From the NCBI GenBank assembly GCA_020536535.1, contig JAHLWZ010000729.1, forward strand, positions 10,116 to 74,115: a stretch of 64,000 nt of DNA, given 5' to 3'. The notes under the pieces were generated by a model that searched no databases, was not told where the DNA came from, and saw only the letters and a list, made by a program, of their open reading frames with translations. Within the stretch, counting starts at the first letter, position 1, and every line of letters begins with the position of its first letter. Below are positions 23,613 through 28,886 of this stretch, piece by piece. Both the position numbers and the translations under genes were made by a program. Source of the DNA: Pelomyxa schiedti. Taxonomy: Eukaryota; Protista; Evosea.

Positions 23613-25960
23613 TCAGTGACGGTCGGCAGAAGGTGGGTGGGGTGAAGGTGTTGGGGTGGTTTGGGCTTGGTTTTGTGGATTGGAATTGCTTGTACGTGAT
23701 CCAGGCAGTTCAGTGTTATCGGATTTACCAACTTGCTCTTCAGCGGAATTCGGTTGTTCGGCGGAGGTTCTTCTTGGTTCCGGAGCAGGCCTCAGTGATA
23801 CAGAATGGGGAGCTCCGGGGTCTTGTCCTTGTCTGTGAAGGGCGACAACGGACTTGAGGAGGTCGAGCAAAGTCTGACCTTTGCACTTGATCTTATTCGA
23901 TTTAAGGTACTTCTTCACCGGCTTCTTTTTCAATTTGTTTTCAGCTTCATTAATGAATGCTTCAGCTACAATGAACAAAAATGAGGAGAAAGAATGTATA
24001 GTAGGCGCTGCTGACACACATTTTAATAACTGCAGAACTTCCTTCTGTAAAGTTTCTTCCTCCTGCAACTGCTTAGCAATCATTTCAGTCTCCAGTTTGT
24101 TGAACTGGGGTACATATGGGGGCCTTGGCCTCTTCACAACAATTTTAGGCAACTTGTTACCTGTAGGAACCGGGAGTACAATGGAAGGTGTTGGTAGTGC
24201 TGCTGTAGGTGGAAGTGGTTCAGTTGACTTGCTTGGCAGGCGGGGCAAGGAAGAGACCTCAGCGTGAAACTGTTCTGAAAGTATCTGAACTGCTTGTTCA
24301 TCACCCCGAAGAAGGCGTTCAGCAATTTGGATGGCCTTACAAAGCAAGGCGGGACTCTGCACTTCTTCCTCAGTGTGATGTTCAAACAACACCAAATTTT
24401 GGAACAGAGAGAAGGTGAAAGTTTGTGCCAGCTTCATCCGGCCTAGGGGGTGCAGTAGGGCTTGATTTGTGGCAGCAGTAAAGTCCATGCCTCGTAGAAA
24501 AAGCTGGATTGCACGGAGGTGTTTGGGACAGAGAGGGCGGGAGCAGCTAACACCAGAGTTGGGCAAAAGAACTTGGGCCACTAGCGGATTTAAGCAGCAT
24601 CTGGGAATTGAATCCTTCAATAAGCTCGTAGTCACAAGAGCAGCAGCTACAACGCCACCATAAGGCAGCACAGAGAGCCGACGCAGTGTGGATTCCAAAT
24701 GCTCGAGGTGCTCGGAATATAGCCAATCATGCAGGGAACTAATGGTCTTCAACTTACAGGGAGTAATTTCTTTGTGAATCAGAAGATCTTGTGAGTGAAA
24801 ATGAGATTATTGAGTGCCTTTTGAGTACTCATACCTGAAAAGGAGATACTCTTCTGCATCAGGTGCTCGTGGGTCTTGGGGAGAGCTGCTTGTAGAATGT
24901 TGAGGAATGGAACCATGAAGCCATGGGATGGCTGAGTCCCGGGTTCTGTAAAGGCTGCATCTTCAAGGACAATACCAGAGCAAACTTCCCAGCACAGAGG
25001 TGCCCATATGTTGTGCTGTGTGAGGAAATCACTATGCAGCGGACAAAGCCTCACGCGCATCTCCTCTAAGCTTTCCGGAATATAATGTTCAAATAAGTAA
25101 CGAAAGTGTGCCTGATGCTTGTCGAAAATTTCGGGTGTACATCTACTCTGTAGGTAAGAAAGCATTTGGTGGCAGGAATCCCCGGAATCCCCCAAAGATG
25201 ATGGCCTGTACTCCCGGACAAATGCCATCAACGCGTTGGGAGTAGTGGGCAGTGATCTTCGAATATCTAGACACCCAGCAGAGTTTCCTGATAAAACTGC
25301 CAAAAGAGCTGTGTGGTATGGCTCCAATGTCAATTTGGTGCACAACTCCTCCCTGGCGGCTATAATGAATGTCACAAATTAGGAAGCAGATACAAAGTGA
25401 CATCGTACCTGGTTATGCATTTGAATGAAGGGTATCGTATCCAAGATGTGACACCCTGGTAAAACAGGATTTGGTTGTCATTTTCGCCAGACAATACGCC
25501 AACGGCTTGCCGTTCCCTTAAAGGCTTCGAATACGACGAGCAACACGAAAGGGTGCGTGCCGTACAAAACAGCGGGGAAACCCCTTGGGTGAGGAACGTT
25601 GCAGTGATCGCATCTTGGAGGAGAAGTAACTGGGGCAGAGGCGGCAGAGGCTGAGGAACAGGAAGTGGCTGGTGCCGCGGGTGCCCTCTTGTCTTTGGGC
25701 CTTTCTAGGCGCTCCCATAACGATCTTTGGCGAGAGGGGTTGTTGGGGTCTTGTCGGGGTCCAAGAATTGGAATCATGACATTGTCAAGTAGCCGAAGAC
25801 TTTCATCGTGCACGTTGCATCCTTTTGCCAACAGCCATCGCAACATCCTTCTATTGGGAGAAGCACAATTGGAGTCAGTGCTTTTTGCGTCATTTCTGAC
25901 AGAAACGATGTGAAATGATGCCGAAGTCCGAGAAAGTACCGTTGGTGAAGGTCCAGGCAA
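23613..25960 (-). CDS. Hypothetical protein, multi-exon; 5' end uncertain (may reach about 26340)
   Basis: Three long same-strand ORFs (25478-25960, 24779-25375, 23613-24752) separated by short intron-sized gaps; no family recognised. Confidence 0.6.
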
Positions 25961-26561
25961 AAATCAGGCTGGACCCGTCCACTACAACGGGGGAGACTGT
26001 GATAGGCGCAACAAAATCGTGTTCCTGCACCTCAAAATCACTAACAATCTGTTCACAACCTATGTTTGTGTGATGAGACGCACTAGTCTTTTACCACTTG
26101 TTGATTTTTTCAGCTCAACATATTTTTGGGACGCAACCAGAGCACACTACTCGTCGTGCTTCCACATATCCAGTAGGAATTCCACATACAACCGCGTAAG
26201 TGCTTATCCAAAAACATACCCCATAGAATCCCATCCAAGCAAAAGCGAGACAGCAACAAAACCGATTTTCATATTTGCAACCTTGGACCCAGAGTGAATA
26301 CCCTCCCATTAAAAGGAGGTTCCTTTTTGCAGCCATCGTCCACCTGAGATACCAGCAATATGACCCACCTTGAACAAAAGTATAACCGCAGCCCCACCTT
26401 CAATTAAACCAGTATAACCAGTAGCCGTCAAACCTCCGTCAAACCAAACACACAACAAAACAAACAAAGCATCACGCAAACCAAAAAAATAACCCAACAC
26501 AACGCGGTAGCAGACACCTACACCACCACCAATCCCCCTCAACCCCCTCTGTCGTTCCCAG

Positions 26562-26569
26562 TATAAAAA
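26562..26569 (+). promoter_or_regulatory. TATA box upstream of the tRNA-like Pol III unit
   Basis: TATAAAAA, 31 nt upstream of the predicted 5' stem start at 26593. Confidence 0.55.
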
Positions 26570-26592
26570 GTTCGTAATAAATGCCCCTACAT

Positions 26593-26696
26593 GTGGGCTT
26601 AATTCGTTGCGTAGCTCAACGGTAGAGCGCCTGGAGAACAGGGTTAGAAGTGTCGGTTCGACTCCCACCGTGTCCGTATCTCACAATTTTTTTTTT
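26593..26696 (+). ncRNA. tRNA-like RNA polymerase III transcription unit lacking a canonical anticodon arm (vault-RNA-like or tRNA-derived ncRNA, or tRNA pseudogene)
   Basis: A box TAGCTCAACGG 26612-26622 with D-stem GCTC/GAGC; B box GGTTCGACTCC 26655-26665; shrunken arm CCTG-GAGAA-CAGG; terminal pairing GTGGG/CTCAC; T10 run at 26687-26696. Confidence 0.65.
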
Positions 26697-26957
26697 CCCC
26701 CCTTTTTTGGCTGTGGTTTGGGGATGCATGATACTCACCCCCAAACACCACAACACCAGAGAGATCCACTGCTGCTGCGTGCCCCACCCAAAAGTCTTTT
26801 CGCTTTGCTCAATCTTTTGGGTGGTTACCGTTTTTTTGGTGTTTCCCAGCGGCCTTTCGATGCAAAAAAGCATAGACCCCTTTTGGTAAACTTGTATGTC
26901 TTTGCGGAAAACTGTAGCTTTTTTCCTCTTCCTTTTTGGCTCTACTCATGTTTTTTT

Positions 26958-28886
26958 TTACTCTACTGTCACAGTGACCTGCACTTCATTGTCGTCATCT
27001 GCTACTTTTGGTGGCAAAGGGGATACACGGGCACTGAAACCAGGGCCACTTGGTGTGATGGTAACCTGCTCGCCACTAGTCACAAATGGTAGCGAGAGCC
27101 TTTGCCCATAGCTCACTCTTCTCTCACCTGTAGAGTGTTAGCACAGCCACTTTTTTTTTTTTGAAATATTTTCACCTGTGGCTGTTGGCTCAGTATGGGA
27201 CAATTCCAGAACAACGGTTGTCTTTACAGAGTCCTTTGTTGTTCAGTTGAGAAGAAATGGAACAAAGGGAGGGTAGTGTACTTCTTGCAACAAGCGCAAT
27301 TTAACAGAACCATCAAATTTACAGGGTGTCACGCCCATGACAACAGAATTTCCGTCTTGCTTCACTGACACTTGCACCTAGGTCGATGTTAGAATTGGCT
27401 GGCAAAAAGCATGTATACCTGTGCCGATGTAGTTTCAATCTTGGGAAGCGATTGCGTGTGAACGAGTTGATCCTTTTCAATGTTCGCTTCCACTGCGAGC
27501 TTATTTTTCATGATGTAGGCTTTAAGTTTCCCATTTGAAATTCTGTACAGTAAAACATTAGAAGGCATCAGAAGAGCTTTAATATACTTCGGCATTAGGG
27601 AACCCACAGGGAAATAGAAAGGAATTTGCCATCCAGTTCGGGAATCGGGAGTGCTGTGCCCAAATCAGTTTGCTTGGGAAACAACAAAGTAGTTACCAAA
27701 CTATAATAGAGGATCCCTTCTTGAAGACAGTGTAAGACTCAGGGCCAAGGGGTGCATCCATCTCCACCCAGTAGGCTTCAGCATTTTCTATACAAATGAG
27801 TTTATTACAATAAGTATGCCGGAAAACCAGATATTGTCTTGGGTGTGTCAGATTTTGGGGGAGATGGAGTAGGTGTTGGAGTTGGGGTGGGAGTAGGTGG
27901 GTTAGTTGGTGTGACAGCTGGAGTCGAGGCAGGGGTGACTTTGGGTGTAACAGGTGCAATAGTGGGAAGAATGCCGGGTGTAGCAGAAGGGTTGGTATCA
28001 AAGTCACCTGCCAGTATCAATACAGCCATATTCCCATATTTTGAGTGAGGACCCACAGAAATGCCAGCCTAAAGGAAGTAAACATATTACCACAGAGTTG
28101 TTGCACAGACCACTCGGCAAGATATATCAAACAAACGAGTGCGGTCAACTTTTTTGGACTCACCATCTGAAATTATCAGCTGTATAATATGTTAAACTTT
28201 TTATTATTTTCTTTTGCTACAAAAACCTGTGCAACCACATCAAAGGCGTTAAGGGCACCATAGGAGAAGAGCTCAAAAAGCTAAGGAACAATCAGTGGAA
28301 GAACAAAGTCTTGCTCGAAGTACCCTTATTCTCCAGGCACCATATCTGGTGTACCTCTGGGAGGGTGTGGTACCATCAGACATTGTGTCATTTGTCTCAC
28401 CTTATCAGAGAGCTTAGAAACTGAAGTTGTAAGCACGGAAGAACCTCTGGGGCCTGCATCAAGGACCAGGTCTCTTGCAGAGTGTGATAAAGGCTCACAA
28501 AATGTGAGAGGTTCTCTGGCTCCTGCACGACGAAGGAATGCTATAGCAGCGTCAACTGCCTCAATTCCATCCGTTGTTTCTCTCTCGCCTACACCCGATA
28601 CAATTTGCCGCTTACCTTCGACGATTCAGTCCAAAAAAAAAAGGCACAAACACACAAACCTCTAAATGTGTGTAAAGTTGTAAGAATACGATCTGCAAAC
28701 GCCGCCGGTGCAGTGCGAGCTGCATTAAGCTCTTTGAATACATCTTCTGCAGTGAATTTTGGTGCCACCAAAGTTTTATTGGCGACAGCCTTCGATACAG
28801 CAGCAGGTCCCTGGGTAGTATTTTGTTTATGTTATTAAGATTGCATATTAACGTACTTGTGCAGCAAGGCCAAAAAGCTTGGCCAT
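26958..28886 (-). CDS. CAP/SCP-domain protein with Pro/Thr linker and beta-rich (possibly HSP20-like) C-terminal region, multi-exon
   Basis: Start MAKLFGLAAQ; VFKELNAARTAPAAF, AVDAAIAFL, LSHSARDLV, IISDG...R..LF and GISVGPHSKYGNMAVL match protist CAP proteins; ends ...EVQVTVTVE*. Confidence 0.75.

Follow-up and report, generated by a model that had tools for sequence, protein, structure and literature searches.

What kind of gene lies behind a TATA box, A and B boxes and a run of ten T that frame a tRNA-like sequence with a collapsed anticodon arm? The question is raised by positions 26562-26696 of the window, by which we mean the whole 64,000-nt stretch of DNA that was analysed (C729:10116-74115 of Pelomyxa schiedti). 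The genome searched comprises 52,367,397 bases in 5337 contigs; it was obtained by single-cell genomics (52.4 Mb, 5337 scaffolds) and described in a paper that mentions neither tRNA nor vault RNA (PMC8887013). The sequencing runs that contain the window stretch include single-cell DNA and RNA libraries and belong to one study.

An earlier note had taken the locus for an apparently intact RNA polymerase III (Pol III) unit encoding a non-decoding RNA of vault-RNA-like layout. All of the motifs that it listed (TATAAAAA, GTGGG, the A and B boxes, the D stem, the miniature anticodon arm, CTCAC and T10) are present where it placed them. However, the unit is not intact: TATAAAAA, which had been regarded as its own promoter element, and the 5' GTGGG both lie inside a dispersed LINE repeat, and the native leader has been replaced. 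In the window, a LINE 3' end is fused to a copy of a tRNA-derived small-RNA gene that is damaged at its 5' end, so that the unit is chimeric. We refer to the version of the tRNA-like gene that is held by the window copy, C729:1130-1226 and C2370:42-134 as the W subtype. The features of the locus are as follows.

26255-26284, plus strand: native upstream block, A/T-rich, ending in ...CATATTTGCAACCTT; near-identical in the three W copies, with about 80% identity further upstream
26285-26328, plus strand: 5' piece of the inserted retroelement, 44 bp; present at six other loci
26329-26605, plus strand: LINE 3' end, about 275 bp; at least 25 genomic copies with 76-97% identity, mostly 3' ends
26562-26569, plus strand: TATA box TATAAAAA, inside the LINE 3' end; other LINE copies have it at an equal distance from the element end
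26593-26597, plus strand: GTGGG, the 5' stem strand of the earlier note, 31 nt after TATAAAAA; LINE sequence, consensus GTGTGGGCTTAA
26609-26686, plus strand: tRNA-like body and 3' trailer, W subtype; identical to C729:1143 onward and to C2370
26612-26622, plus strand: A box, matching TRGCNNAGTGG at 9 of 11 positions
26614-26628, plus strand: D arm, stem GCTC/GAGC
26630-26642, plus strand: stub anticodon arm CCTG-GAGAA-CAGG, 4 bp and a 5-nt loop
26655-26665, plus strand: B box, matching GGTTCGANNCC at 11 of 11 positions
26669-26675, plus strand: acceptor 3' strand
26680-26686, plus strand: trailer end CTCACAA, with CTCAC at 26680-26684
26687-26696, plus strand: T10 Pol III terminator with a C run after it; the same T-run-then-C-run context is found behind many genuine tRNA genes in this genome

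The LINE insertion at the window copy

A non-LTR retrotransposon (LINE) that targets the starts of tRNA genes occupies 26285-26605, in a copy with an internal deletion. When 26540-26720 was searched against the whole genome, the matches split at about 26605: the part at 26540-26605 recurs at some 20 other places with 89-97% identity, and the part at 26609-26720 matches only C729:1143-1253 and C2370:10-121 (99-100%) and C1563 (78%). The repeat boundary is at 26602-26605. On C1517, the 3' piece follows an open reading frame with the C-terminal half of an RVT_1 domain (E 6.9e-15), which identifies the repeat as a non-LTR retrotransposon. Since the 44-bp piece lies about 370-910 bp upstream of the 3' piece at three or more loci, at least C2312, C821 and C711, the copy in the window is internally deleted.

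In element orientation, the LINE ends in ...TATAAAAA-N23-GTGTGGGCTTAA and a few C. Six genuine tRNA genes, i.e., Ile/Leu (intron-bearing), Met, Ser, Gln (twice) and Glu, have such an end either about 2-15 nt in front of their 5' end or slightly within it, and two tRNA-like units are abutted in the same way. The end on C312 stands in front of a non-canonical unit with a B box and a T-run, and three distinct flanks contain no recognisable Pol III gene. At the window copy and two other loci, the insertion reaches into the first coding bases. The element thus combines the marks of a tRNA-targeting non-LTR retrotransposon: a reverse transcriptase reading frame, truncated copies and a fixed short distance to Pol III genes. 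Among the tRNA-gene-targeting non-LTR retrotransposons of dictyostelids, the closest are NLTR-A of Dictyostelium purpureum, with insertions 2-6 bp in front of the coding part of the tRNA gene, and TRE5-A (PMC5911963). The P. schiedti LINE shares with the dictyostelid elements the reverse transcriptase, truncated or internally deleted copies, ends within about 15 bp of tRNA 5' ends and a tendency to land also at non-tRNA Pol III-type units. In contrast to them, it resides in one of the Archamoebae, some of its insertions enter the first coding bases, and in place of an oligo(A) tail it has, at the 3' end, a TATA box and a leader-like TGTGGG...AA.

The empty site is retained in the paralogues as ...CATATTTG(A/C)ACCTT-ATGTGGGAACGGC-GCGTAGCTC, or in short form ...AACCTT-ATGTGGGAACGGC-GCGTAGC. 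In the window, its left flank stops at 26284 and its right flank restarts at 26609. The insertion has replaced 13 bp, which comprised the leader and the start of the acceptor 5' strand, and has displaced the native block at 26255-26284 to about 320 bp from the gene body. An uninterrupted join with the letters of the empty site also occurs in a contig from a DNA run; because of 17 other differences nearby, that contig represents a paralogue rather than an allele. It was by accident that the LINE supplied the window copy with a TATA box and another GTGGG.

The window copy is therefore unable to make the terminal stem that the uninterrupted paralogues form from their own leader, and it is probably impaired or dead. 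As a 94-99-nt RNA, it folds no better than shuffled sequences (z = +0.4 to +0.5), so that the pairing of GTGGG with CTCAC is a chance 5-bp match (z = +0.41 at 99 nt). The paired ends described in the earlier note are thus genuine as a family feature, made with the native leader in the paralogues, and fortuitous in the window. With the covariance model R1, which was built from four family members, the window copy scores 61.9 bits versus 80.1 for the intact W copies. Taken alone, the window yields the more modest result of a damaged gene copy.

The insertion is nonetheless informative about the gene that it hit. Targeting by Ty3 and TRE5-A needs intact or functional A or B boxes and the loading of TFIIIC and TFIIIB (PMC5911963). 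If this rule extends to the P. schiedti LINE, the insertion would mark the unit as having been bound by Pol III factors, and by this analogy it would provide independent, genetic-style evidence that such unusual units are recognised in vivo as Pol III genes. The window copy is identical to its paralogues in spite of the insertion, which fits a recent hit and fits ongoing gene conversion too.

At the LINE 3' end, TATAAAAA precedes GTGTGGGCTTAA by about 23 nt, and GTGTGGGCTTAA resembles the TGTG(G)AA leaders of several tRNA genes and of the tRNA-like family. Judging from this resemblance, the LINE may swap the upstream promoter and leader of the genes it hits for a look-alike. Promoter-like motifs beside tRNA-like units in P. 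schiedti should be treated with caution, as they may be retrotransposon ends.

Two LINE-derived units of about 1.23 kb each are arranged in tandem at C711:88280-90175, with 45 nt from the end of the first to the start of the second, an arrangement suggestive of repeated insertion at one target. At 87058-87495 of the same contig, a 94-nt unit occurs three times in tandem at a spacing of 171-173 bp; each copy has an A-box-like motif, a B-box motif and a T6 run, and the unit is not called by ARAGORN. As such a unit directly follows the LINE end on C312, the 94-nt unit is a LINE target too.

Uninterrupted paralogues and the wider family

In a permissive scan, the Rfam tRNA model (RF00005; gathering score 29 bits) matched the window copy over 26605-26676 with 27.1 bits (E 0.0067), below the gathering score; the acceptor stem has two mismatches to the model and the T stem one, and the anticodon arm is collapsed. 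Across the whole window, Rfam gave zero matches at gathering score, and at a permissive E-value it gave, apart from this sub-threshold tRNA, only chance matches, with no Vault and no Y RNA. The two uninterrupted W copies reach 31.5 bits with the tRNA model, above its gathering score. They have the native leader ATGTGGGAA, internal A and B boxes, a D arm, a T arm, the reduced anticodon arm (4-bp stem, 5-nt loop), a trailer of 10 nt with complementarity to the leader, and a T10 terminator, in a unit of about 93 nt. The predicted fold is a cloverleaf in which leader and trailer extend the acceptor to a helix of 15 bp that contains two bulges of one base each (-32.2 kcal/mol, z = -1.6). The copy on C729 lies about 35.5 kb from the window copy on the same contig, and the two belong to a segmental duplication of about 1.7 kb (window 25397-27072 versus C729:1-1584). 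Duplicated along with the tRNA-like gene is the 3' end of a neighbouring gene; over the final 120 nt (26952-27072), the two duplicates are identical.

Searches of the P. schiedti genome by pattern, by D arm, by DNA similarity and with R1 identified a family of about ten loci in several subtypes. In addition to W, there are the Lb subtype (C1563, twice, C216 and a fragment on C5172), the La subtype (C16) and more distant members (C291:1413-1504, C4253 and C4). R1 assigns 62-116 bits to the W and L copies, 39 to C291 and 27 to C4253, against at most 37 for ordinary Ala, Arg and His tRNA genes. With the Rfam tRNA model, the L subtype scores 35.3-35.6 bits and the family overall 27-36 bits, at threshold.

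The family plan of A and B boxes, stub arm, leader-trailer pairing and a T8-T11 run is mostly kept in the diverged relatives (C1563, C216, C16, C291 and C4253). The Lb copies have a 13-nt stub arm, CCTG-GTTTT-CAGG, and a 12-bp outer helix. In C291, the stub has 4 bp and a 3-nt loop, and the terminal helix is an uninterrupted 14 bp of different sequence (z = -2.4); across the intact W, Lb and C291 copies, the fold z-scores range from -1.6 to -3.7. C4253 combines the TGTGGG leader of W and L with the inner stem of C291 and is without the stub arm. The La copy (C16:141681-141778) has a 19-nt arm with UCA in a 9-nt loop, for which ARAGORN labels it SeC, and retains the bulged long terminal helix; by parsimony, its longer arm may be a secondary insertion. 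The link from W and L to C291 should be regarded as provisional, being based on 39 bits and generic tRNA features and bridged by C4253.

As the earlier note expected, the copy number (three near-identical copies, about ten loci) is that of neither a SINE head nor a lone decaying pseudogene. A SINE head is also out by layout: the family unit stops at the T-run right after the tRNA-like part, and the conserved block of the L subtype extends upstream, not downstream. A kinetoplastid-type tRNA-like promoter of a divergent snRNA was likewise considered and dropped, the host being an amoeba with spliced genes.

A conserved inverted-repeat motif, GAACCACCAAGGGTTC, is found about 30-45 nt upstream of the units on C291, C4253 and C4 and is absent from W and L; it may be an upstream promoter element. 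Another tRNA-like unit, with a good D arm (TAGCTCAGYGGTAGAGC) at its start and uncalled by ARAGORN, is present at C2370:1152-1240 and in two copies on C1144. C2370 is a small contig dense in odd tRNA-like sequences beside a W copy.

Conservation and alternative explanations

To judge from these sequences, a family of tRNA-derived, non-decoding Pol III RNAs is plausible. We hold with moderate confidence that the small-RNA gene of which 26609-26696 is a copy descends from a tRNA gene, and that its family is a functional non-decoding tRNA-derived Pol III RNA.

The strongest competitor, which we consider unlikely, is that these loci are dead tRNA pseudogenes that lost part of the anticodon arm and were then spread by segmental duplication, their likeness being due to recent duplication or gene conversion and no RNA function being involved. 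The small size of the family, the marginal tRNA-model scores and the location of the window copy and C729:1143 within one duplication on one contig all agree with this view. So does the lack of a transcript among the RNA-seq contigs of two single-cell libraries, which cover the neighbouring mRNA and a LINE copy and leave the unit uncovered, although such data miss small non-polyadenylated RNAs and are little informative here.

The distribution of substitutions, all comparisons being between paralogues in the one genome of P. schiedti, speaks against dead copies. Between the window copy and C729:1143, the unit at 26609-26696 shows 0/88 differences, whereas 30 of 184 columns differ in the upstream flank and 19 events are found within 255 nt of the downstream flank; Fisher's test gives p = 4.7e-6 versus upstream, 0.005 versus downstream and 1.6e-4 versus both. 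Flanks among the close copies differ by 7-16%; the C2370 copy is identical over 121 nt and has 78% identity upstream. Immediately before the leader, some 30 nt (26255-26284) are near-invariant as well. Gene conversion could account for the identity among the three W copies as an alternative to constraint. Where W and Lb differ (78% identity), it is in the acceptor strands, the variable region and the loop of the stub; the A-box and B-box blocks are spared. Moreover, the stub arm and the long terminal helix persist, with compensatory changes, across subtypes that are 73-78% identical or less, and the trailer is complementary to the leader, unlike in the genuine tRNA genes that were compared by eye.

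On an alignment of few, related sequences that was fitted to the structure model, 90.7% of the pairing cells are paired, compared with 77.6 +/- 1.8% in shuffles and 40-52% with slid partners. There are 13 two-sided pair changes, including six in the terminal helix, a result reached by 0/500 shuffles. These compensatory changes in the aligned copies support the helix. The preference of the earlier note for a functional tRNA-derived RNA over a decaying pseudogene is therefore reasonably supported for the family, with its conserved boxes and terminator, compensatory helix changes and identical units, but not for the window copy, which is damaged.

It is improbable, in our view, that the units matter only as DNA, as sites for TFIIIC and TFIIIB binding that serve as a chromatin boundary or a harmless LINE landing pad, with the RNA being irrelevant. 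Conservation between subtypes does peak at the A and B boxes, the LINE did land at the unit, and in other systems Pol III factors are needed for targeting of this kind (PMC5911963). Nevertheless, selection for DNA binding leaves the compensatory leader-trailer changes and the conserved terminator unexplained.

A special case of the non-decoding RNA reading, which we rate as more doubtful still, is that the family supplies the vault RNA of P. schiedti. Vault RNAs are encoded by Pol III genes, about 90-140 nt in length, in which the A and B boxes are internal, the 5' and 3' ends form a stem and a T-run serves as terminator. The intact unit shares this general layout: at about 93 nt it lies within the 86-141 nt range, it has both boxes and the T-run, and its ends are predicted to pair over 12-15 bp in the intact paralogues and relatives; in the window copy they do not, the 5' strand being LINE. 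The earlier note had proposed a search for MVP and TEP1 genes. MVP repeats (PF01505) occur on six contigs (C810, C516, C352, C518, C850 and C93), some of them perhaps allelic or duplicated, and a single TROVE gene (PF05731) is present on C807. Because of these genes, a vault RNA or a Ro/TEP1 partner RNA is expected somewhere in the genome. On the other hand, the Rfam Vault model (RF00006) found no match in the whole window at gathering score, around the window copy with the E-value limit raised to 10, or on the paralogues with a limit of 1, and nothing ties the tRNA-like family to MVP. The family is also far more tRNA-like than known vault RNAs, with a recognisable tRNA cloverleaf including D and T arms, and the window copy has no native 5' strand.

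A working decoding tRNA of unusual shape or with an unrecognised intron is scarcely credible, despite the good D and T arms, the scores of the intact copies above the tRNA threshold and the UCA-bearing, SeC-labelled relative on C16, because the W unit has a 4-bp stem and a 5-nt loop instead of the 5-bp stem and 7-nt anticodon loop of a tRNA, its 13-nt arm is too short for an anticodon loop, and an intron would lengthen and not shorten it. In agreement with the earlier note, no normal tRNA score was obtained when introns were allowed: ARAGORN, with or without introns, called no tRNA gene in the window or in the W or Lb copies. As to tRNA-Sec, the genuine gene is elsewhere, at C1146:9231-9316 (67.9 bits on RF01852, the sole genomic match), the loop of the C16 relative is 9 nt, and W has no UCA.

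The proposed RNA and related systems

The surroundings of the W gene are those of a tRNA gene. In 56 ARAGORN calls from sampled loci, most of them genuine tRNA genes, position -8 is A or T in 84%, and many tRNA leaders, by eye, end purine-rich before +1 (TGAAA, TGTGAA or CTGTGGAA). The W leader TGTGGGAA and the T10-C6 terminator fit these leader and terminator patterns. Therefore, the W gene looks like a tRNA transcription unit whose trailer has turned complementary to its leader, a complementarity seen in none of the genuine tRNA genes compared by eye. From the A-box spacing (the A box is 17 nt downstream of the first base of the leader) and the leader motifs, we infer a Pol III start at or just before ATGTGGG; a start downstream of ATGTGGG would preclude the long helix.

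In the mechanism that we propose, TFIIIC and TFIIIB would load onto the A and B boxes, and Pol III would initiate within the leader, some 17 nt before the A box. The predicted transcript of about 93 nt would have both ends in the 15-bp helix, in contrast to the single-stranded leader and trailer that let tRNA ends be processed to a 7-bp acceptor, and this helix should exclude RNase P, RNase Z, CCA addition and aminoacylation. Such a transcript would be stable and non-decoding, with a tRNA elbow on a closed stem, and would probably bind protein, the candidate partners being La, a Ro/TEP1-type TROVE protein and vaults. If expressed, the family would represent a tRNA gene turning into a non-decoding structural RNA, and the route, if this is true, would be loss of the anticodon loop together with gain of a trailer that locks the ends. 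This would be in a lineage that has vault and TROVE proteins and no known partner RNA for either.

Several tRNA-derived or tRNA-like non-decoding RNAs use tRNA-type Pol III promoters. Rodent BC1, the 4.5S RNAs, the mascRNA of MALAT1 and the tRNA-like parts of the TMERs of murine gammaherpesvirus 68 are all tRNA-derived or tRNA-mimicking and non-decoding, and in mascRNA the anticodon arm is reduced. In contrast to these RNAs, the P. schiedti family has an archamoeba as its host and occurs in several diverged subtypes, and its leader and trailer are apparently kept, predicted to pair as a helix of 12-15 bp rather than to be removed by RNase P and RNase Z. The bacterial Y RNAs of the YrlA type carry a tRNA mimic on a Ro-binding stem. 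Like YrlA, the P. schiedti family has a tRNA-like elbow on a long closed stem, and the P. schiedti genome has a TROVE (Ro/TEP1-type) gene. In YrlA, however, the tRNA module joins the stem at a different point, whereas the P. schiedti units keep the normal tRNA order with the stem as an extension of the acceptor, and Ro is a putative partner.

A bolder and, as a whole, rather doubtful extension would be that the Archamoebae possess an undescribed class of Pol III RNA that arose from ordinary tRNA genes, with a tRNA elbow, a stub arm and a closed leader-trailer stem of 12-15 bp, and that a Ro/TEP1-type or vault particle is its partner. Separately, this extension would have the LINE 3' TATA box and leader look-alike keep the Pol III genes that are hit in working order.

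The gene next to the tRNA-like unit lies on the minus strand at window positions 26911-28660, and its 3' end is about 215 nt from the unit. Pfam searches with five of its single exons gave no match. The gene is spliced, with at least 11 introns of 40-48 nt (GT..AG), and it is represented by RNA contigs from two runs.
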